Positions 3,967-61,780 of a stretch of 64,000 bases of DNA are shown here, piece by piece (within the stretch, counting starts at the first letter, position 1; every line of letters starts with the position of its first letter). Both the position numbers and the translations under genes were made by a program. The stretch lies in sequence record NC_071039.1; one strand, given 5' to 3'. Under the pieces are notes generated by a model. That model was not told where the DNA came from. It saw only the letters and a list, made by a program, of their open reading frames with translations, and ran no database searches.

Positions 3967-3996
3967 AGGGGGTTAAGTAACTAACCCCCTATTTTT
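3967..3996 (+). terminator. Intrinsic terminator
   Basis: AGGGGGTTA-loop-TAACCCCCT followed by ATTTTT. Confidence 0.7.
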
Positions 3997-50969: not shown

Positions 50970-51007
50970 ATTATAAAATATGTTACTATCCTTTAATGGT
51001 ATAAAAT

Positions 51008-53029
51008 ATGAAAAATTATTTGTTAACTGTACCTGTCAATTCTAATGTAGATTATACTAAACTAGATATACACGATTTTGTTCCTGCAATAAAAGAATTA
51101 ACAACTAGATTATTTTATAACACAGGTGTAACACTTCAAAAAGAAACTATTTTGTTTAATGATTTGGTAGTATCCGAAGATGCTAGTCGATTAGCATTTA
51201 TTAATAGCATTTTGCATAATCTATTGAATACTTGCTCTACTACTGAGTTAGAAAATATTGCAGATGAGTGTGATACTATTTGCACAGAATACTATAATAA
51301 TTCTAGAATCGCATATTCTGAAAGAGAATACAATGCATATAAAAATATAAAAAATAATGAATCGTATTTTTCAAGTCTAAAATATTATGAACAAAAATAT
51401 GTAATTGATGCTATAGAATATTACGAAGAAGAATCTGATATTAATTTCTCGCATGATACAAAAATATACCTATCATCTTTATATTCGAAACTTAATAAAG
51501 CACAGCAGAATTTTTCTAATAATATAATAAAACATACTGCAAAAAACAGGTATTATTTTGAACACGATTTCCAAGTTGAAGGTATACCAGATAACATAAA
51601 AGATATAATGCGGGAGAATGCAAGGGCAGACGGTCATGAATCCGGATATGTAGCTACAACTGAACACTACATCTACACAGCTATAATGCAATATTGTTCG
51701 TACGAGTATACTAGAAAAACAATGTTAGAAGCTTTTTATGTAGCTAGTAACGGCGAATATAGCAATACAACTAATATAACAGATATTGTATCTATTAAAT
51801 CTGAAATAGCAAAATTGTTTGGGTTTAGTACGTTTGCAGAAAAATCATTAAAGCATAAAATGGCAAAAACACCCGATAATGTATTTTCTGTATTAAATAA
51901 ATTGAAAGACTTAGTAGTAGATAAAGCATTAGAAGAAGAAAAAGAACTTTTAACTTTCGCTAAATCTAAAGGATACCAACGACCTTCTGTCCGCGCCGCT
52001 GACAGAAATTATTATTCTACTATGAGATTAAAAGAAGAATATAATTTAGACAAAAAGGTTATAGAAGAGTATTATACATATGCCGGTGTTCTTCCTTGTA
52101 TATATGGTGTTATAAAAAAACTTTTTGATGTTACATTTGTAGAAGACCCCGATGCATCTGTGTGGCATGAAGATGTTAAATGCTATAAGGTATTCGAAGA
52201 TAGCAAGCATATTGCATATATTTTTATAGATCCGTTTTCTAGGAACGGAAAACAATCCGGGGCATGGATGAATGGTATTATTAAAAGGGATTTTGCTTAT
52301 AATACCACTCTACCGGTTGCAGTAATAGTGACTAATCTGTCAAAAACATCTATTACGTTAGATGATGTACGTACACTCTTGCATGAATTTGGTCATGCAT
52401 TACACCATGTACTTACTAAAGTAGAATTTCCTAATTATAATGGAATTTCTGTAGAATGGGATGCAGTAGAATTGCCGAGCCAATTATTGGAAAATTGGAT
52501 TAATGATAAAGAGCTTTTAATTGAAATGTCGTCTCATTATTCTACAAAAGAAAAAATTCCAGAATATATAATTGATAACTGGTTGGCTATAGATAATTAT
52601 ATGGCTGCGTCTTCGTTAAGAACACAGTTATTATATTCATTAGTAGATATGAAAATTTTTAATAGCAATGCAAAGACAGATAAAGATTGTATAGAAATTT
52701 TTAATGAAGTAGCAAAAGATTTAAAATTAAACACAGAAGATAATCCGTTTATGCATTTGTTTTTATATTCGTTTTCTCATATATTTTCCGGAGGATATAC
52801 AGCAGGTTATTATAGCTATTTGTGGGCAGAAATTATGTCAAGTGATGTTTATTTAGAATTTAAAAATAAAGGAATGTATAATATAGAATTTGCTAATAAA
52901 ATTAAAAAAGATATTCTATATGCAGGTTCTATTAATGACTTTGATGTAATGTATAGAACATTAATGGGTAGAGATCCTGACCCAGAATCTCTGCTAATAG
53001 TTAGGGGATTGCAGAATAGCAAAAAATAA
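51008..53029 (+). CDS. prlC: M3-family zinc oligopeptidase (oligopeptidase A-like)
   Basis: KQSGAWM, TLLHEFGHALHH (HEXXH), WDAVELPSQLLENW, HIFSGGYTAGYYSYLWAE. Confidence 0.92.
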   Translation: MKNYLLTVPVNSNVDYTKLDIHDFVPAIKELTTRLFYNTGVTLQKETILFNDLVVSEDASRLAFINSILHNLLNTCSTTELENIADECDTICTEYYNNSRIAYSEREYNAYKNIKNNESYFSSLKYYEQKYVIDAIEYYEEESDINFSHDTKIYLSSLYSKLNKAQQNFSNNIIKHTAKNRYYFEHDFQVEGIPDNIKDIMRENARADGHESGYVATTEHYIYTAIMQYCSYEYTRKTMLEAFYVASNGEYSNTTNITDIVSIKSEIAKLFGFSTFAEKSLKHKMAKTPDNVFSVLNKLKDLVVDKALEEEKELLTFAKSKGYQRPSVRAADRNYYSTMRLKEEYNLDKKVIEEYYTYAGVLPCIYGVIKKLFDVTFVEDPDASVWHEDVKCYKVFEDSKHIAYIFIDPFSRNGKQSGAWMNGIIKRDFAYNTTLPVAVIVTNLSKTSITLDDVRTLLHEFGHALHHVLTKVEFPNYNGISVEWDAVELPSQLLENWINDKELLIEMSSHYSTKEKIPEYIIDNWLAIDNYMAASSLRTQLLYSLVDMKIFNSNAKTDKDCIEIFNEVAKDLKLNTEDNPFMHLFLYSFSHIFSGGYTAGYYSYLWAEIMSSDVYLEFKNKGMYNIEFANKIKKDILYAGSINDFDVMYRTLMGRDPDPESLLIVRGLQNSKK

Positions 53030-53120
53030 TAAATTTTGCTGCATATATAAAAAGCTATGTAACGCTGTGCTATTTGGCTTTTGTTGCATTTTATAGCACA
53101 AAAACCCCATAAAAATAGCC

Positions 53121-53149
53121 TAGACAAGCAACTGTAAACACTGTATAAT
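53121..53149 (+). promoter_or_regulatory. sigma70-type promoter
   Basis: TAGACA-17 nt-TATAAT with TG extension. Confidence 0.7.
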
Positions 53150-53176
53150 TGCTTTATTATAGTAAGGGATAAAATA

Positions 53177-53473
53177 ATGAACATTCATTTATCTTTTAAG
53201 GAACAACTTTCTAAGCTAATTGATGAAAACATAAATAAATACCCCGATGCTATAGATTGGATAGTATCTCAAATGGCTTTAATAGATATTGAATCTAAAA
53301 AGACAAAAGCAGAATCTATTATGGAAGCTCTTATAGGTGATACTGAATTTTTTAATAACCCTATAGAACAGGGTGGAAGTAATAAAGATTTTATAGTGTG
53401 GTATGTAACTAAATATAATTGTACTACTAAATACGCTATAGAACGGTTACTTCATTATTGTAAACAGAATTAG
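53177..53473 (+). CDS. Hypothetical protein
   Basis: RBS AAGGGA; own promoter. Confidence 0.65.
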   Translation: MNIHLSFKEQLSKLIDENINKYPDAIDWIVSQMALIDIESKKTKAESIMEALIGDTEFFNNPIEQGGSNKDFIVWYVTKYNCTTKYAIERLLHYCKQN

Positions 53474-53560
53474 CCCTTAGGACCGCCAAATGTTTTGGCT
53501 TAAGGCGCACCGGTGCTGTATCGGAGCTTAGTGATTCGCTACCACAAAAGCATAAGCAGC

Positions 53561-53588
53561 TAGGAGACTTAAAACGTCTCCTATTTTT
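53561..53588 (+). terminator. Intrinsic terminator
   Basis: TAGGAGAC-TTAAAAC-GTCTCCTA-TTTTT. Confidence 0.8.
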
Positions 53589-53600
53589 ATATATACAGGA

Positions 53601-53801
53601 GTGAAGTATATGAATAGCGATTATGCCTCTATGTTTATAGTAATATTTGCTATATTGGTTGTGTTTATTTGTAAACCGACAACATTTAATGAGCCTAAAA
53701 ACACTATCGATACAAACAAAAGCAATGTAGCGAACGACAGTATTCCACTTACAGGAAACATTTCTAGAACACCGGGTATAGGTACAGGTATAGGATTATG
53801 A
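53601..53801 (+). CDS. Small membrane-anchored protein
   Basis: RBS AGGAG, N-terminal TM helix. Confidence 0.6.
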   Translation: MKYMNSDYASMFIVIFAILVVFICKPTTFNEPKNTIDTNKSNVANDSIPLTGNISRTPGIGTGIGL

Positions 53802-53950
53802 AAAAGAAAAACCCAATCGAGCGCAATCCAGTTGCACATCATGTAAACACATTTAACAAACCTAAAGTAGAAAAAGACAAGACAAAATACTCTAGGAAAC
53901 AAAAACACAGGACTAGGAATAGTCCTGATTTTTTATGTATAATATATTGA
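53798..53950 (+). CDS. Small basic ArfA-like protein (50 aa; below cutoff)
   Basis: MKKKNPIERNPVAHHVNTFNKPKVEKDKTKYSRKQKHRTRNSPDFLCIIY; AGGA RBS; ATGA overlap with upstream gene. Confidence 0.65.
   Translation: MKKKNPIERNPVAHHVNTFNKPKVEKDKTKYSRKQKHRTRNSPDFLCIIY
53908..53934 (+). terminator. Intrinsic terminator inside the ArfA-like ORF
   Basis: CAGGACTA-GGAA-TAGTCCTG-A-TTTTTT, upstream of in-frame TGA at 53948. Confidence 0.8.
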
Positions 53951-53956
53951 CAGATA

Positions 53957-55117
53957 TTGTATTTGGAATATACAATATGCATAACAAGGAGTGTTATTGT
54001 GGCAAAAACGAAACATATTTTTAAAGTTCCAGATTATTCTCTTTTAAAATTAGATTCTAAGACATATACTAAGGATTATAGGAATGCAATTTGGTATTTG
54101 CATTATGAAGCATCTGCTGCTACTCTTAAATCTGCAACACTAAAATGGATTAAAAATAATACATCTTATGATGTAAAAGATTTATCTTCGTTGAGTGATT
54201 CTGATTTTTCTATTATCGGAAAATATTGTACTATACTAAATGCCGGCGGACAACTTCCTAGTCATGCTAATTTCGTCGAATCACACATAGACAAGATATT
54301 TCAATCTATCAAAAAAGAAGAAATTACAGAAATTGTCGAAGAACCAGAACCTAAAATAGAGCATGATAGTTGCAAAGTTAAAAAAATAAGTATACAGGAT
54401 AGAATTAAGAGCCAGGCATATAAAGCTTGCGGAGAAATTGAAGGATTAATAGATCAATTTTATAGTAATCCTAGTGAGTTTGTAGTATCCCAGCAAGAAA
54501 TAGAATCCTTATTTAAAAAATCAGAAATAAAATCCCATCATGTAAAATATATTACCGAAATATATAGCACTAATAAAAAAGAATTAGAGGAGCTTTCGGC
54601 AGGAAAATCCGAACAGTTAAACGAAGGTTATAATTTTTTAACTAAACGGGATATAAACAAAGCCATAAAGCTATTTAATTTAATTATAGAAACTGCGTCT
54701 AGTAGTAAAATAGTTACTGTTAAGAAACGAGCTAAAAAACAAAAGCCATTGGATATTTCTAAATTAGTTAAATCATTTAAATATTTAGAAAAAAGCACAG
54801 ATCTTAACTTAGAAAGTATTAATCCTGTCCATATTGTTGGTGCAAAAGAAGTATGGGTGTTTAATACAAAAAGTAGAAAGTTAGGAAAATATATTGCTTT
54901 AGACACTACAGGTCTATCAATAAAAGGAACTACTATAACTAATTTTTCAGAAAAAAGCATAGAAAAAACTATTCGTAAACCGGAAGAATATTTTAAAAAT
55001 ATTAAGAAAATTTCTAAAAAGGCAAAAGAAAAATTATTTGTAGATACTAAATCTGTCGAAACTAAACTAAAAGGAAGAACAAACGAGCATTGTATCATTC
55101 TTGAGGTTATAAAATAA
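53957..55117 (+). CDS. Hypothetical protein (true start probably GTG ~53999 after AAGGAG)
   Basis: 386-aa ORF; TTGACA-18-TACAAT promoter at 53947-53976. Confidence 0.75.
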   Translation: MYLEYTICITRSVIVAKTKHIFKVPDYSLLKLDSKTYTKDYRNAIWYLHYEASAATLKSATLKWIKNNTSYDVKDLSSLSDSDFSIIGKYCTILNAGGQLPSHANFVESHIDKIFQSIKKEEITEIVEEPEPKIEHDSCKVKKISIQDRIKSQAYKACGEIEGLIDQFYSNPSEFVVSQQEIESLFKKSEIKSHHVKYITEIYSTNKKELEELSAGKSEQLNEGYNFLTKRDINKAIKLFNLIIETASSSKIVTVKKRAKKQKPLDISKLVKSFKYLEKSTDLNLESINPVHIVGAKEVWVFNTKSRKLGKYIALDTTGLSIKGTTITNFSEKSIEKTIRKPEEYFKNIKKISKKAKEKLFVDTKSVETKLKGRTNEHCIILEVIK

Positions 55118-55152
55118 ATAGTGTTATCTATATACAGAGGCACTTTATAAAA

Positions 55153-55905
55153 ATGGCTACAAGTACAGCAAGAACAGAAATAAAGAAACAAATAATGCGA
55201 AGACTGGGAAATAGTATGACTGATGTAGAACTAGACCCAGAAGATTTAGATTTAGCAATAGATTTTGCAATAGATAGATACCGCCAGCGCGCCGAAAATG
55301 CTTGCATGGAAAGTATGCTGTTTATAACTCTGCAAAGAGATGAAACTGAATACACTCTACCTACTGAAGTTCAAGAAGTAAGACGACTATATCGTAGATC
55401 TGTTGGATCAGGAACATCTGGCGGTACTAACTTTGATCCGTTTGAATCTGCATTTTCGAATATATTCTTTTTACAAGCAGGGCGAACCGGCGGTCTAGCA
55501 ACATGGCATCTATTTTCCGAATACCAAGAAACTTTAGGAAGAATATTTGGATCTGAAATAAACTTTACATGGAACTATGCAGATAGAAAACTCACTATCA
55601 TGCGAAAATTCCAAGGTGCCGAAACAGTATTAGTAGTTGTGTGGGTAGCAAAATCTGAAGATGTGCTTTTGACTGATGTATATAGTAGACCGTGGTTAAG
55701 AGATTATGCTATTGCCCAGTCTAAATATATGTTGGGTGAAGCACGTAGTAAATTTACTAATGGCTTACCAGGACCGAACGGTAGTGTTACTTTAAACGGC
55801 GATCAGTTAAAACAAGAAGCATTTGCTGAAATGGAACGTTTAGAAAACGAAATTATAAATTATACAACCGGAACATCGTTTGGTATGCCATTCATTATTG
55901 GATAA
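55153..55905 (+). CDS. gp13: Neck protein gp13-like
   Basis: IMRRLG....VELDPEDL...WLRDYAIAQSKYMLGEARSKF..LPGPNGSVTLNG; AATAAATA late motif at 55113. Confidence 0.85.
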   Translation: MATSTARTEIKKQIMRRLGNSMTDVELDPEDLDLAIDFAIDRYRQRAENACMESMLFITLQRDETEYTLPTEVQEVRRLYRRSVGSGTSGGTNFDPFESAFSNIFFLQAGRTGGLATWHLFSEYQETLGRIFGSEINFTWNYADRKLTIMRKFQGAETVLVVVWVAKSEDVLLTDVYSRPWLRDYAIAQSKYMLGEARSKFTNGLPGPNGSVTLNGDQLKQEAFAEMERLENEIINYTTGTSFGMPFIIG

Positions 55906-55909
55906 ATGG

Positions 55910-56551
55910 ATGATTATAGGGACGTTAGGATTTATTGGGTCAGGAAAAAATACTGTAGCAAAATATTTAGTTGAAAATCATAATTTTATACAGGATAGTT
56001 TTGCGGCAGCGTTAAAGGATTTACTGTCATCTACTTTTAGTTGGGATAGAACGTTATTAGAAGGTACTACACCGGAATCTAGGCGTTGGAGAGAAACTAC
56101 AGACACATGGTGGGCGACAAAGTTAGGTATACCTAATTTTACTCCTAGGTATGCAATGCAATATATAGGAACTGATGTATTACGGATGCATTTTAATGAT
56201 AATTTATGGATATTAACATTAGAAAAGCGATTAGAATCATTTATACAAAATAATAAGAATGTAGTAGTATCAGATGTAAGATTTAAAAATGAATATAATA
56301 TGCTAAAGCAATATGGTACAAAGTTCATATATGTAGAAAACGTTATCCCAGAATGGTATAATATTGCATTAGACTTAAATACATCAGACTATACTGATAA
56401 AGAAAAACAAAATATTATCGAGAATTCGTCATTAAACGGTGTCCATATATCTGAATGGGATTGGGTAGGATTAGGTTACGATGAGAAAATTATTAATAAT
56501 AGTACACTGGAAGAACTGTTTCTAACTGTAGATAGTATTATTAATAAATAA
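55910..56551 (+). CDS. Deoxynucleoside monophosphate kinase (T4 gp1-like)
   Basis: MIIGTLGFIGSGKNT P-loop; SFAAALKD; TPRYAMQYIGTD; VVSDVRFKNE. Confidence 0.9.
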   Translation: MIIGTLGFIGSGKNTVAKYLVENHNFIQDSFAAALKDLLSSTFSWDRTLLEGTTPESRRWRETTDTWWATKLGIPNFTPRYAMQYIGTDVLRMHFNDNLWILTLEKRLESFIQNNKNVVVSDVRFKNEYNMLKQYGTKFIYVENVIPEWYNIALDLNTSDYTDKEKQNIIENSSLNGVHISEWDWVGLGYDEKIINNSTLEELFLTVDSIINK

Positions 56552-56555
56552 TATA

Positions 56556-56578
56556 AATAGGGGCAATGCCCCTATTTT
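56556..56578 (+). terminator. Intrinsic terminator
   Basis: AATAGGGGCA-A-TGCCCCTATT. Confidence 0.65.
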
Positions 56579-56614
56579 ATTGAGTGTTATATCTGCAATG
56601 ATTATTAAGTATGC

Positions 56615-56622
56615 GATAAATA
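56615..56622 (+). promoter_or_regulatory. Late promoter motif GATAAATA for tail sheath
   Basis: Upstream of gp18 start at 56669. Confidence 0.65.
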
Positions 56623-56668
56623 CTGATATCGTAATACTGTATAATTCATAAAGGGAGATTATAACACA

Positions 56669-59308
56669 ATGGCAACTCTCATTTCTCCGGGTGTAAGTGT
56701 AACTATAACAGACGAATCTTTTTATGCATCGTCTGGTCCGGGAACTGTACCGCTTATAATCATAGCAACTGCTCAAGATAAAACTGATAGTGCCGGTACT
56801 GGAATTGCACCGGGAACCACTAGACAAAATGCAGGTAGACTATGGCTAATTAGTTCTCAAAGAGAACTACTACAAACGTTTGGTGTTCCGACTTTTAAAA
56901 CAGTTGGCGGAACTGCATTGCACGGATATGAACTAAATGAATATGGATTGTTAGCAGCACATTCGTATTTAGGAATATCTAATAGAGCCTATGTTGTGCG
57001 GGCAGACGTAGATACATCTCAGTTAGAACCTTCTGATACTGAGCCCACTGCTAATCCTGCAGACAACACCTATTGGTTAAACCCTACAAAAGTTGTGTCG
57101 GGATTATATGAGTCTAACGGCACTGACTGGGTAAAAGCAAATGTATTTTATGCAACTGAATTTGACGCAGCTGGTCGCCCAGCAAATGTTCCGTCTAGTT
57201 ACAAATATGCAATGTCAGTAGGACAAGCTGCTCCTAACGTAGAAAATGCAATATATAGACGCAACATATCCGGCGCATGGGTTTTAATTACTGCCAACGA
57301 TAATACAGTTGTATATAATAAGGTATATCCTGTAGTAGGTGCTGTAGGGAATCTATGGGTAAACCTAAGGGAAACTTCATATGCATTGTCTAGATTCGAT
57401 GCAAATGTAGGAAGTTTTGTATCCGTATCTACTCCTTTGTACAAAACGAGCGATGATGCTACCGACGGTTTCGGAACTACACTACGCCAGGGCTCGGTGT
57501 TTGTGCAATATAATGCAAAAGGAACATTATCTAGTGCAGTTAATCCTGCAGTAACCGAACTACAACATAAGGTAAAAATACACAACGGTAACACTTTCAC
57601 TGCTGTTTCTGTAACCTTAGCAGCAACTGGTCCTTATAGCGATACATTAGTATTAGGACGCTATAACGGAACATCAGTGACAGTTAACGCATCTGGTTCT
57701 AGCGTAGAGGCATTTGCTCAATCGTTAGGACAAGCTTTAGTTTCTAACGGTGTTACTGATATTTCAGTTAATTACAATACTGCCTCTAGAATGGTAGCGT
57801 TAGTTAACGATAGTGGAAAAGATATAATAGTTACATCATCTACTATGTTTAGTGCCGGCATATATTCTAATTGGGTTCCACTAGAATATAGTTCTGCTGT
57901 AAAACAACCATCCGGTCAATTAGATAACGGTACATTGTGGTACAGCACAGATTATAAAGTTGACATTCTAGTTAACGATGGCGTAGGAGCATGGACTGAT
58001 TTAGCTGGCAATTTATTTGTACAAAGTGCTGAACCTACTACTAACGTAGCTGACGGCGATGTATGGGTAAGCACTTCGTCTGCAGGCAATTATCCGGTTA
58101 TATATCGTAGGGTAAATAACCAGTGGAGATTAGTAGATAATACTGATCAAACAACACCTAACGGTGTAATATTTGCTGATGCAAGACCTGTAAATTCCGG
58201 AGCATTAGATGCAGACGCACCGGACGCACTTGCATATCCGCAGGGAATCTTGCTATTTAATACTCGCTATTCCACACGTAACGTTAAACAATGGCAAAAT
58301 AATTATACCTTTGAAGGTAACGTTATAGGAGATAGATGGGTATCTGTTAGTGGTTTAAGATCGGACGGCTCTTTATACACCGGCGGCGAAGCAGTTAAAC
58401 AAGTAGTCGTTCGTTCTATTGCTAGCACAATACAGGCTAATGAAGATATTCGTTCTGAAAACGTGTTTTATAACCTAATTGCTGCGCCTGGTTATCCTGA
58501 ACTAATAGACGAGTTAGTAGCATTAAACGTTGATAGAAAACAAACTGCATTTGTTATAGGCGATTCGCCATTTACTTTGAGTGCAACTGGTACTAATTTA
58601 CAAGAATGGTCTTCTAATTCTAAATTAGCAACAGAAAACGGTTCAGATGGATTAGTTACTGCTGATCCGTATTTAGGTGTATATTATCCGTCCGGTCTAA
58701 GTACAGATCTAAATGGTAACAATGTAGTTGTTCCTCCTAGCCATATGTTACTTCGTACTATTGCGTATAATGACCAGGTTGCATATCCGTGGTTCGCTCC
58801 GGCAGGATATCAACGTGGTATAGTGTCTAACGCAACTTCGGTAGGTTATATAAACAGCGAAGGTGAATTCGTTGCAGTTTCGTTAAATGAAGGGCAGCGG
58901 GATACTCTGTATACTAATAATGTTAACCCGATATCGCAAGTGCCTAATAGAGGTATAGTAGTATGGGGTCAAAAATCTAGAAATCCAGTTACTTCGTCAT
59001 TGGATAGAGTTAACGTAGCAAGATTGGTAAACTATGTTAGATATCAATTAGATTTGTTGCTAAAACCGTTTGTATTCGAGCCAAACGATTCACGTACTCG
59101 TCAAGCAGTGCAGGTAGCAGTAGAGGCTTTCTTAAGCGAAATAGTAACATTACGCGGTATCACTGATTTCGTTGTAGACTGTTCTGATTCTAATAATACT
59201 CCGGATCGTATAGATAGAAACGAATTGTGGGTTGACGTTGCAATAGTGCCCACCCGTGCAGTTGAATTTATTTATGTTCCGATTCGTTTGCAAAATACCG
59301 GATCTTAA
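56669..59308 (+). CDS. gp18: Tail sheath protein
   Basis: LISPGVSVTITDESFY; PWFAPAGYQRG; RDTLYTNNVNPI; WGQK; LDRVNVARL; FVFEPND; NNTPDRIDRNELWVD. Confidence 0.95.
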   Translation: MATLISPGVSVTITDESFYASSGPGTVPLIIIATAQDKTDSAGTGIAPGTTRQNAGRLWLISSQRELLQTFGVPTFKTVGGTALHGYELNEYGLLAAHSYLGISNRAYVVRADVDTSQLEPSDTEPTANPADNTYWLNPTKVVSGLYESNGTDWVKANVFYATEFDAAGRPANVPSSYKYAMSVGQAAPNVENAIYRRNISGAWVLITANDNTVVYNKVYPVVGAVGNLWVNLRETSYALSRFDANVGSFVSVSTPLYKTSDDATDGFGTTLRQGSVFVQYNAKGTLSSAVNPAVTELQHKVKIHNGNTFTAVSVTLAATGPYSDTLVLGRYNGTSVTVNASGSSVEAFAQSLGQALVSNGVTDISVNYNTASRMVALVNDSGKDIIVTSSTMFSAGIYSNWVPLEYSSAVKQPSGQLDNGTLWYSTDYKVDILVNDGVGAWTDLAGNLFVQSAEPTTNVADGDVWVSTSSAGNYPVIYRRVNNQWRLVDNTDQTTPNGVIFADARPVNSGALDADAPDALAYPQGILLFNTRYSTRNVKQWQNNYTFEGNVIGDRWVSVSGLRSDGSLYTGGEAVKQVVVRSIASTIQANEDIRSENVFYNLIAAPGYPELIDELVALNVDRKQTAFVIGDSPFTLSATGTNLQEWSSNSKLATENGSDGLVTADPYLGVYYPSGLSTDLNGNNVVVPPSHMLLRTIAYNDQVAYPWFAPAGYQRGIVSNATSVGYINSEGEFVAVSLNEGQRDTLYTNNVNPISQVPNRGIVVWGQKSRNPVTSSLDRVNVARLVNYVRYQLDLLLKPFVFEPNDSRTRQAVQVAVEAFLSEIVTLRGITDFVVDCSDSNNTPDRIDRNELWVDVAIVPTRAVEFIYVPIRLQNTGS

Positions 59309-61743: not shown

Positions 61744-61780
61744 CTGCAAGCTATTTTACTTAGCTTGCAGTTATTCTTTT
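61744..61780 (+). terminator. Probable terminator after tube gene
   Basis: CTGCAAGCTA-loop-TAGCTTGCAG followed by TTATTCTTTT. Confidence 0.6.

Follow-up and report, generated by a model that had tools for sequence, protein, structure and literature searches.

ArfA and the control of its synthesis through non-stop mRNA are textbook knowledge. In the Escherichia coli gene, a stem-loop lies in the open reading frame (ORF) after the Lys-His (KH) motif and leads to non-stop mRNA, acting by premature termination or as an RNase III target, so that the hydrophobic tail of the protein comes from full-length mRNA only (PMC8012679). The gene of BrfA in Bacillus subtilis, a factor that evolved independently of ArfA, carries a rho-independent terminator before its stop codon, and trans-translation gates the expression of the gene (PMC8012679). 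The KH motif of both proteins contacts the ribosomal mRNA entry channel, and the segment of ArfA that recruits RF2 comprises a strand at residues 27-30 together with Phe-25 (PMC8012679). In a survey from 2024 that covered over 15,000 genomes, ArfA is described as the least conserved rescue factor, confined to Gammaproteobacteria, some Betaproteobacteria and a few Bacillus (PMC11633108). The rescue design in which a terminator precedes the stop has so far been described only for cellular arfA and brfA. Here, a phage gene with the same order of elements, gp191 (EST35_0191), is described in a stretch of 64,000 nucleotides (64 kb) from sequence record NC_071039.1, which is called the window below.

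Window bases 51000-57000 are 100% identical to Pseudomonas phage vB_PaeM_PA5oct (MK797984.1; window position = MK797984.1 position minus 62000), a 287-kb jumbo phage whose host is P. aeruginosa, and they match 10 further records of the same genus at 98.7-99.5%. In MK797984.1, the ORF at 53798-53950 (+ strand) is annotated as the hypothetical protein gp191. It runs from an ATG to a TGA at 53948-53950 and encodes a small, very basic protein of 50 amino acids, with a conserved DUF7230 domain at residues 8-41 (53819-53920, + strand) that is delimited by a Pfam match, by the family alignment and by alignment to ArfA with hhalign. The domain is laid out as an N-terminal Asn-Pro-Val-Ala, a middle Phe-Asn-Lys-Pro-x-Val-Glu-Lys and a basic tail Lys-Tyr-Ser-Arg-Lys-Gln-Lys-His. 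The last two residues of this tail, Lys-36 and His-37 (codons at 53903-53908, + strand, read from the sequence), form a KH motif that aligns with Lys-44 and His-45 of E. coli ArfA. The reading that is put forward here, with a confidence a little above even, is that gp191 is a phage member of DUF7230, that DUF7230 is a divergent branch of ArfA, and that the gene is built like arfA and brfA for a rescue activity gated by transfer-messenger RNA (tmRNA).

The terminator on which this reading turns lies within the ORF. Its hairpin (53908-53927, + strand; terminator scan and folds) has the form CAGGACTA-GGAA-TAGTCCTG, with eight pairs, four of them G-C, and a GNRA loop, and is followed by an A and then by a run of six T (T6, 53929-53934, + strand; sequence and terminator scan). 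The first base of the stem is also the last of the His-37 codon. The hairpin itself encodes residues 38-44, and the stem and T run together encode residues 38-46, after which four codons remain before the TGA, 21 nucleotides past the stem and 14 past the last T. Folded on 37 nucleotides, the hairpin has an energy of -13.1 kcal/mol (z = -5.7), and none of 200 dinucleotide shuffles is as stable; the other gene-end terminators of the window span -11.5 to -18.4 kcal/mol, and this value falls among theirs. The post-hairpin codons (53930-53947, + strand) translate into Phe-Leu-Cys-Ile-Ile-Tyr, a hydrophobic read-through tail of only six residues that lies outside the Pfam match; the tails of cellular DUF7230 proteins are longer. 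An A-rich run at 53901-53905 is able to pair with T6, so that the site scores on the - strand too. The terminators at 3967-3990, 53908-53927 and 61744-61770 all give scores on either strand, their stems being preceded by an A run and followed by a T run, and look bidirectional.

A census of terminator-like sites was made over the whole window. The other strong + strand gene-end terminators are those at 3967, 4278, 21166, 50936, 61016 and 61744, and at all six the stop lies 11-26 nucleotides before the hairpin or inside it; the site at 53908 is the sole strong gene-end terminator with a gene stop shortly after the hairpin. The other ORFs that cross terminator-like sites either do so at weak matches of 6-7 bp deep in long genes or are short and unannotated. 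PA5oct relies on the host RNA polymerase (it is rifampicin-sensitive), with promoters of the type TTGAC / TATAATA and 36 factor-independent terminators at transcript ends (PMC7318152), and for these reasons a host-type intrinsic terminator should work at 53908. The 3' end of the gp191 transcript is expected at about 53934-53936, within codons 45-46 and without a stop, because intrinsic terminators work that way. That the terminator makes most of the gp191 mRNA non-stop is slightly favoured by the balance of probability.

An earlier reading of the window, made from its letters (the sequence-only reading), had described the ORF at 53798-53950 with a terminator inside its frame and a TGA about 14 nucleotides past the U-tract, and had claimed that elsewhere in the window stops lie before or within the hairpins. 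Both descriptions are borne out by the ORF, hairpin, T6 and TGA at 53948 and by the six other terminators of the census. The same reading had cautioned that a point indel might explain the pattern, and this caution can be set aside. The identical 50-residue protein is encoded in 10 of the 11 records of the phage genus (the ten include the PA5oct genome twice), and a sequencing or assembly indel is rejected on this ground as the reason why the terminator precedes the stop. In MIJ3, which was sequenced independently, the gp191 region is identical at the DNA level. In phi30-3, one frameshifting single-base difference in length falls within the ORF but past the conserved domain; the ORF annotated there has 75 codons and its tail is in another frame, while the DUF7230 domain is unchanged. 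Either genuine variation or a sequencing error in that record could account for this difference; taken as a variant, it would show that the frame in which the tail is read is not constrained.

Membership of gp191 in DUF7230 (PF23876) is clear (E = 3e-16; 59.7 bits with a cut-off of 27). The match covers profile positions 3-36 of 42 and leaves out the last nine residues of the protein. All 24 proteins of the family alignment A1 match DUF7230, and N10, V12, D27, K30, Y31, R33 and K36 are invariant or nearly so among them. The family core consists of Asn-Pro-Val-Ala-Lys-His, then Phe-Asn-Lys-Pro-x-Val-x-Arg/Lys-Asp-Lys-Thr-Lys-Tyr-x-Arg-Lys-x-Lys-His-Lys, and is followed by tails of very different lengths. 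gp191 also matches four PHROG families of unknown function, including phrog_6310 at E = 7e-12. Relatives were found by tblastn in at least 556 phage records, of which 388 are from Vibrio phages and 140 from Pseudomonas phages (including the PAK_P1-like Pakpunavirus group), the rest being from phages of Acinetobacter and others. An exhaustive protein search with gp191 returned 25 representatives, two of them spurious; the long matches P0013 and P0019, which are repetitive eukaryote-like proteins, were discarded as chance. Weak matches to Pfam DUF6291 recur for gp191 and its relatives (E = 0.0015 to 0.16, profile positions ~34-71 of 79), and DUF6291 may be another small related family. 

Sequence comparison makes it likely that gp191 belongs to an ArfA-related lineage. 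When gp191 is compared by BLASTP with E. coli ArfA (taken from NC_000913.3, locus L061), residues 23-44 align with ArfA residues 31-52 with 9 of 22 identities (E = 0.002, for a single comparison), and the aligned stretch ends at KH. In the reverse direction, the only Pfam match of E. coli ArfA besides ArfA itself is DUF7230 (E = 0.11), and the ArfA of Pseudoalteromonas matches DUF7230 at E = 0.0098. The two families are bridged by a 51-residue protein of Pseudoalteromonas phage J2-1 (ATN93434.1, 'alternative ribosome-rescue factor A'), whose residues 7-46 reach 41.3 bits on Pfam ArfA (cut-off 25.5) and whose residues 26-50, which overlap them, reach 28.6 bits on DUF7230 (cut-off 27); both Pfam families are also precomputed for this protein. 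The J2-1 protein has 12 of 23 identities with gp191 (E = 3e-7) and matches the PDB chains of E. coli ArfA (5u4i_w and 5mdv_6, also 5h5u and 5mgp) over its whole length at E = 1e-5.

Comparison of profiles with hhalign points in the same direction. Twenty-four DUF7230 sequences against an enteric-only ArfA set gave a Prob of 11.8% (E = 0.0025), with 24 columns aligned around the KH tail. A diverse set of 13 ArfA proteins was drawn from chromids and misfiled chromosomes in the plasmid collection, a scan of genome contigs having given only Enterobacteriaceae. Against this set, 73 DUF7230 sequences gave 68% (E = 4.7e-5) and 124 trimmed DUF7230 domains gave 90.4% (E = 1.4e-6). The alignment is collinear from the N-terminal Asn motif to KH, with one gap of one residue and one of three residues (ArfA Gly-Lys-Gly); with the 124 domains it is collinear over 38 columns, whether or not J2-1 is included. 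Val-24, Glu-25 and Lys-26 of gp191 align with Val-29, Glu-30 and Lys-31 of ArfA, and Phe-19 is one column off ArfA Phe-25. On the DUF7230 hidden Markov model (HMM), each of four ArfA proteins that bear KH (E. coli, Proteus, Vibrio and Pseudoalteromonas) beats 399-400 of 400 composition-matched shuffles, and gp191 on the ArfA HMM beats 4978 of 5000 shuffles of itself. Composition alone is rejected as an explanation of the match, because shuffles rarely reach the observed scores.

Existing names fit this placement in part: NCBI uses 'DUF7230 family protein' (Methylobacter, Methylococcaceae), and IMG names P0187 and P0188 'stalled ribosome alternative rescue factor ArfA'. The ArfA-like character proposed by the sequence-only reading thus finds support in the J2-1 bridge, in hhalign, in the reciprocal weak matches set against shuffles and in the IMG names, gp191 itself having no direct match to Pfam ArfA. 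The Foldseek check that had been proposed at the same time gave no match to PDB with the AlphaFold model of gp191, which has no globular fold (predicted template modelling score, pTM, 0.21) and one short helix at residues 11-19. The AlphaFold and Foldseek results are uninformative either way, because a peptide of this kind would take on order only when bound to the ribosome. In word-indexed searches of proteins, gp191 and the J2-1 protein each retrieved nothing but the query itself. Among phages, tblastn with E. coli ArfA found true phage ArfA genes and no DUF7230 gene, and tblastn with J2-1 found almost nothing, probably because of low-complexity masking.

The order of hairpin and stop was then compared among relatives of gp191. 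Ten long-tailed DUF7230 representatives were picked because their tails looked like translated non-coding DNA. In all ten, a stable hairpin starts 0-7 nucleotides after KH, and in nearly all the stop lies 30-50 nucleotides further; several have T runs, and four are in ordinary bacterial chromosomal neighbourhoods. A metagenome sample that was not selected by tail comprised 69 usable distinct loci, for which the fold of the 72 nucleotides after KH was scored. The 45 loci with tails of at most 10 residues have z values between -3.0 and +1.6; of the 24 loci with tails of at least 12 residues, 16 have z ≤ -4.9, with 20-30 pairs. In these 16 hairpin genes, the stop is beyond the hairpin in 13, in the 3' arm in two and at the hairpin end in one. 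The hairpin-bearing long-tailed genes are those of Methylococcales (Methylobacter, Methyloprofundus, Methylococcaceae).

Covariation was analysed across 11 Methylococcales-type genes: of the 22 pairs in the hairpin, 12 show compensatory double changes, and 95.9% of the cells are paired. None of 500 shuffles reaches any of these measures, and slid controls have at most five compensatory pairs. The RNA structure of the Methylococcales hairpin is therefore under selection, because the compensatory changes exceed those in the shuffle and slid controls. A hairpin before the stop is also present in classical ArfA genes, namely those of Pasteurella, of Citromicrobium phage RXM and of a record named 'phage Y3'. 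A strong hairpin that directly follows Lys-His and precedes the stop is a recurrent feature of independent DUF7230 lineages, with support from covariation.

Beyond the order of terminator and stop, each step of the mechanism (termination, tagging by tmRNA, ribosome binding and recruitment of RF2) is one that we infer. The host RNA polymerase would meet a terminator beginning at the KH motif's His codon, and most gp190-gp191 transcripts would end near 53934, fourteen bases short of the TGA, so that ribosomes translating gp191 would run off a non-stop mRNA. With spare capacity of tmRNA-SmpB, the product of about 45 residues, comprising KH and eight or nine more residues, would be tagged and degraded; with tmRNA saturated, as is plausible late in infection when host mRNA is being destroyed, untagged product would be released and would add rescue capacity. 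Active truncated ArfA has a length close to that of this expected product. Where a ribosome has stalled at the 3' end of a truncated mRNA, the basic C-terminal segment Lys-Tyr-x-Arg-Lys-x-Lys-His would probe that ribosome's empty mRNA entry channel, and the middle segment Phe ... Val-Glu-Lys would recruit RF2, by which the peptide would be freed. That gp191 rescues ribosomes with RF2 is given an even chance. The full 50-residue form with its short hydrophobic tail would come from read-through transcripts only.

Several observations, which are given in this and the next three paragraphs, weigh against this reading. Among viral contigs (55 loci), most DUF7230 genes stop 2-10 residues past KH, with acidic or polar tails and no hairpin; one viral group has its stop in the hairpin loop, and a jumbo-phage subgroup has a 10-bp hairpin that extends from KH to the stop. 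The sequence-only reading had called for the order of stop and terminator in homologues to be compared, and had named homologues ending at Lys-His-Lys as evidence to the contrary. The outcome points both ways: the hairpin precedes the stop in most of the Methylococcales genes, and most phage homologues have normal stops after Lys-His-Lys, a few residues on and without a hairpin, so that the contrary evidence is present in part. The non-stop layout is therefore recurrent in DUF7230 but not universal. The hairpin of gp191 has 8 bp, against 20-30 bp in cellular DUF7230 genes, and a ribosome closely behind the polymerase could mask it and suppress termination. Read-through is also harmless to the phage and costs it nothing, because a sigma-70-type promoter-like site of gp192 follows at once (53947-53976, + strand; TTGACA-18-TACAAT, 11 of 12 matches, promoter scan); the TGA of gp191 lies inside its -35 hexamer (TTGACA).

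These features would suit an ArfA-like gp191 in which it is incidental that the terminator precedes the stop, a tiny gene having had the operon terminator and the following promoter packed against it. The full 50-residue protein would then be the one that works, with no gating by trans-translation, and translation through the hairpin or leaky termination would yield enough complete mRNA. The ordinary ORFs of most phage homologues, the short hairpin and the position of the stop within the next promoter's -35, which suggests tight packing, all fit such an account, and the 13 open codons after KH are, judging from composition, not rare by chance in A+T-rich DNA. An incidental order is nevertheless regarded as rather unlikely. 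Site 53908 alone has this order among the strong gene-end terminators of the window; the start of its hairpin coincides exactly with the KH codons, which is where the hairpin also begins in independent DUF7230 genes of cells and phages, in arfA and in brfA (PMC8012679); and in the related phage phi30-3 the tail is in another frame with the domain intact, as would be expected with no constraint on the tail.

Within the family, some phage members depart from the rescue-factor pattern. The relatives in Vibrio T5-like phages (Demerecviridae; L166, L167 and L168, match at ~1501-1656) keep the N-terminal and middle motifs and have acidic tails without Lys-His, and in three IMG/VR contigs (L021, L050 and L027) the DUF7230 domain is embedded in, or forms the N-terminus of, proteins of 331-454 residues, which are either true fusions or the result of lost stops. 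Phage members of DUF7230 may therefore have more than one function, because some are without KH and some are fused into larger proteins. The Vibrio relatives adjoin RNase H and exonuclease genes, and the ORF is unannotated in record 70E35.6. Such variation or loss of the KH tail, which suggests non-classical functions, is compatible with gp191 being a decoy or blocker that sits in the ribosomal mRNA channel without rescue and competes with tmRNA-SmpB or with the ArfA or ArfB of the host, for the purpose of host shut-off or of blunting a defence that acts through stalled ribosomes. The best-conserved resemblance to ArfA is indeed in the channel-binding tail, and the N-terminal half (Asn-Pro-Val-Ala-Lys-His) is unlike that of ArfA and is aligned weakly by hhalign. 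A decoy is nevertheless judged improbable, for gp191 and the family conserve the Val-Glu-Lys segment, which in ArfA forms the strand that is added to RF2 (PMC8012679), and chromosomal DUF7230 genes with arfA-like hairpins fit housekeeping rescue factors rather than inhibitors.

The relation to ArfA is itself the subject of several negative results. Neither gp191 nor any of 23 further DUF7230 proteins matched Pfam ArfA (PF03889) at E ≤ 10, and 10 Methylococcales DUF7230 members gave no match to Pfam ArfA either. No ArfA chain in PDB was found at E ≤ 10 with gp191 (phmmer) or with the 24-sequence DUF7230 profile, and NCBIfam gave nothing for gp191. When J2-1 is removed from the ArfA set, the hhalign values fall to 21.6% (E = 1e-3) for the 73 DUF7230 sequences and 46.7% (E = 2e-4) for the 124 trimmed domains. 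The DUF7230-ArfA signal is moderate, and leans on one bridging sequence and on a short Lys-rich stretch. In the literature, no paper mentioning DUF7230 and no functional datum for any DUF7230 protein were found, and gp191 is not among the virion proteins flagged in the PA5oct annotation. That DUF7230 is unrelated to ArfA, gp191 being some other small basic nucleic-acid-binding protein of convergent Lys/Arg-rich composition, would agree with the absence of direct Pfam and PDB matches, with the 11.8% obtained with the narrow ArfA set and with the chance recurrence of short basic motifs, but is very improbable in view of shuffles that seldom reach the scores (0-1 of 400 for the four KH-bearing ArfA proteins, 22 of 5000 for gp191 on the ArfA HMM), a bridge above both curated cut-offs, an alignment collinear over the whole domain and the same unusual gene architecture at the same codon.

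The surroundings of gp191 are as follows. The gene order is oligopeptidase A (gp188), two small hypothetical genes, gp191, gp192, and then neck and tail-sheath genes. The gene directly upstream, gp190 (53610-53801, + strand; annotation and sequence), encodes a small protein that has a single hydrophobic segment, at its N-terminus. The gp190 stop and the gp191 start share bases (TGA and ATG in ATGA), and gp190 and gp191 are therefore probably translationally coupled within one transcription unit. This pair of genes is bounded by two terminators, that at 53908 and an intrinsic terminator after gp189 (53561-53583, + strand; terminator scan; fold -11.5 kcal/mol, z = -4.1), and is without an obvious promoter of its own. 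At the gp191/gp192 junction, terminator, stop and promoter all lie within about 70 nucleotides. The spacer between gp189 and the upstream terminator (53474-53560, + strand; about 90 nucleotides) is noticeably G+C-richer and holds no ORF; it has no Rfam match, and its folding is no better than that of shuffles (z = -1.45). A tmRNA, a tRNA or a known RNA family was looked for near gp191, and none was found. Two genes upstream of gp191, at 51008-53029 (+ strand), lies a full-length, phage-borne M3 oligopeptidase A gene (prlC-like; Pfam Peptidase_M3, E = 3e-105).

Phage ArfA genes as such are already known, having been annotated and mentioned in passing; no paper was found in which a phage ArfA is made from a non-stop mRNA. 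gp191 appears to be a phage gene wired to the trans-translation capacity of its host through a terminator before the stop. A wider proposal is made only tentatively and is doubtful as a whole: that DUF7230 is a second, unrecognised ArfA-type lineage, which is the ArfA of Methylococcales and has spread via hundreds of phages that infect Pseudomonas, Vibrio, Acinetobacter and marine hosts and use it to recycle ribosomes on cleaved mRNAs, and that PA5oct keeps the ancestral tmRNA-gated switch. If so, the cleavage of mRNA could come from the phage's own host shut-off, or from defences that cut RNA or act through non-stop translation, and PA5oct would sense the exhaustion of host trans-translation and add to rescue capacity at no other time. 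ArfA would have a wider range than is known so far, and the management of ribosome rescue by large lytic phages themselves would be indicated. A testable function is thereby proposed for a Pfam 'domain of unknown function' carried by the phage records counted above and by Methylococcales.

Among known systems, ArfT of Francisella (KGG-repeat stress protein family) resembles gp191 in being basic and very small; it is a rescue factor of about 40 residues that forms a helix (PMC6514570). No in-ORF terminator is described for ArfT, which works with both RF1 and RF2, and it was matched in no sequence search. BrfA resembles gp191 in having a KH motif in its channel-binding tail as well as in its gene order, and the gating of its expression is the same as that proposed for gp191; its chain in PDB (6SZS) was not matched by gp191 or by the DUF7230 profile at E ≤ 10.

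The phage-borne ArfA proteins (J2-1, g10 of Citromicrobium phage RXM, gp99c of Salmonella phage Arash and that of Pseudomonas phage pf16) are, like gp191, encoded by small genes in large lytic phages. They keep the classical N-terminal half of ArfA and reach PF03889, whereas gp191 does neither. J2-1 shares the tail Val-Glu-Arg-Asp-Lys-Thr-Lys-Tyr-x-Arg-Lys-x-Lys-His with DUF7230, but its gene has an ordinary stop a few residues after KH; RXM g10, which has been discussed as ArfA (PMC8953757), has an 11-bp G+C-rich hairpin inside the ORF and before the stop, the order seen in gp191. Arash, pf16, J2-1, RXM, RsoM2USA and others were found to carry ArfA genes by tblastn. In Arash, gp99c (L148:317-541) is annotated as 'ribosomal protein L2' and is likely misnamed, with 67.8 bits on Pfam ArfA. 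Unannotated ArfA-like ORFs occur in pf16 (L149:401-517, 71 bits) and in Ralstonia phage RsoM2USA (L153:401-547, 22 bits), where coding sequences on the opposite strand are annotated instead; the RsoM2USA protein has a DUF7230-like Asn-Val-Val-Ala-Lys start and an ArfA-type tail. A 24-kb record (L152, 'UNVERIFIED: Pseudomonas phage Y3') has an ArfA-family ORF of 41 bits without KH, with an 11-bp G+C-rich hairpin in the ORF before the stop; this record may be host DNA rather than phage.

E. coli ArfA and gp191 are both small basic proteins, and they are collinear in Asn-x-hydrophobic-Ala ... Phe ... Val-Glu-Lys ... Tyr-x-Arg-Lys-x-Lys-His. Unlike ArfA, gp191 falls below the Pfam ArfA model, has no Gly-Lys-Gly before the Tyr and has another N-terminal motif; it is phage-borne and has 50 residues against 72. 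The element within the ORF also differs, being a short intrinsic terminator with a T run in gp191 and a stem-loop that acts by premature termination or RNase III in arfA. The cellular counterparts within the family are the Methylococcales DUF7230 genes (Methylobacter, Methyloprofundus, Methylococcaceae; e.g. WP_333877047.1). They encode members of the same Pfam family (63-70 bits) with KH at the same position, and the hairpin follows KH by 0-7 nucleotides with the stop beyond it in 13 of 16 genes, which is the order of gp191. They differ from it in being stand-alone chromosomal genes with covarying hairpins of 20-30 bp and read-through tails of 20-40 residues, whereas gp191 has a terminator of 8 bp and a tail of 13 residues after KH.

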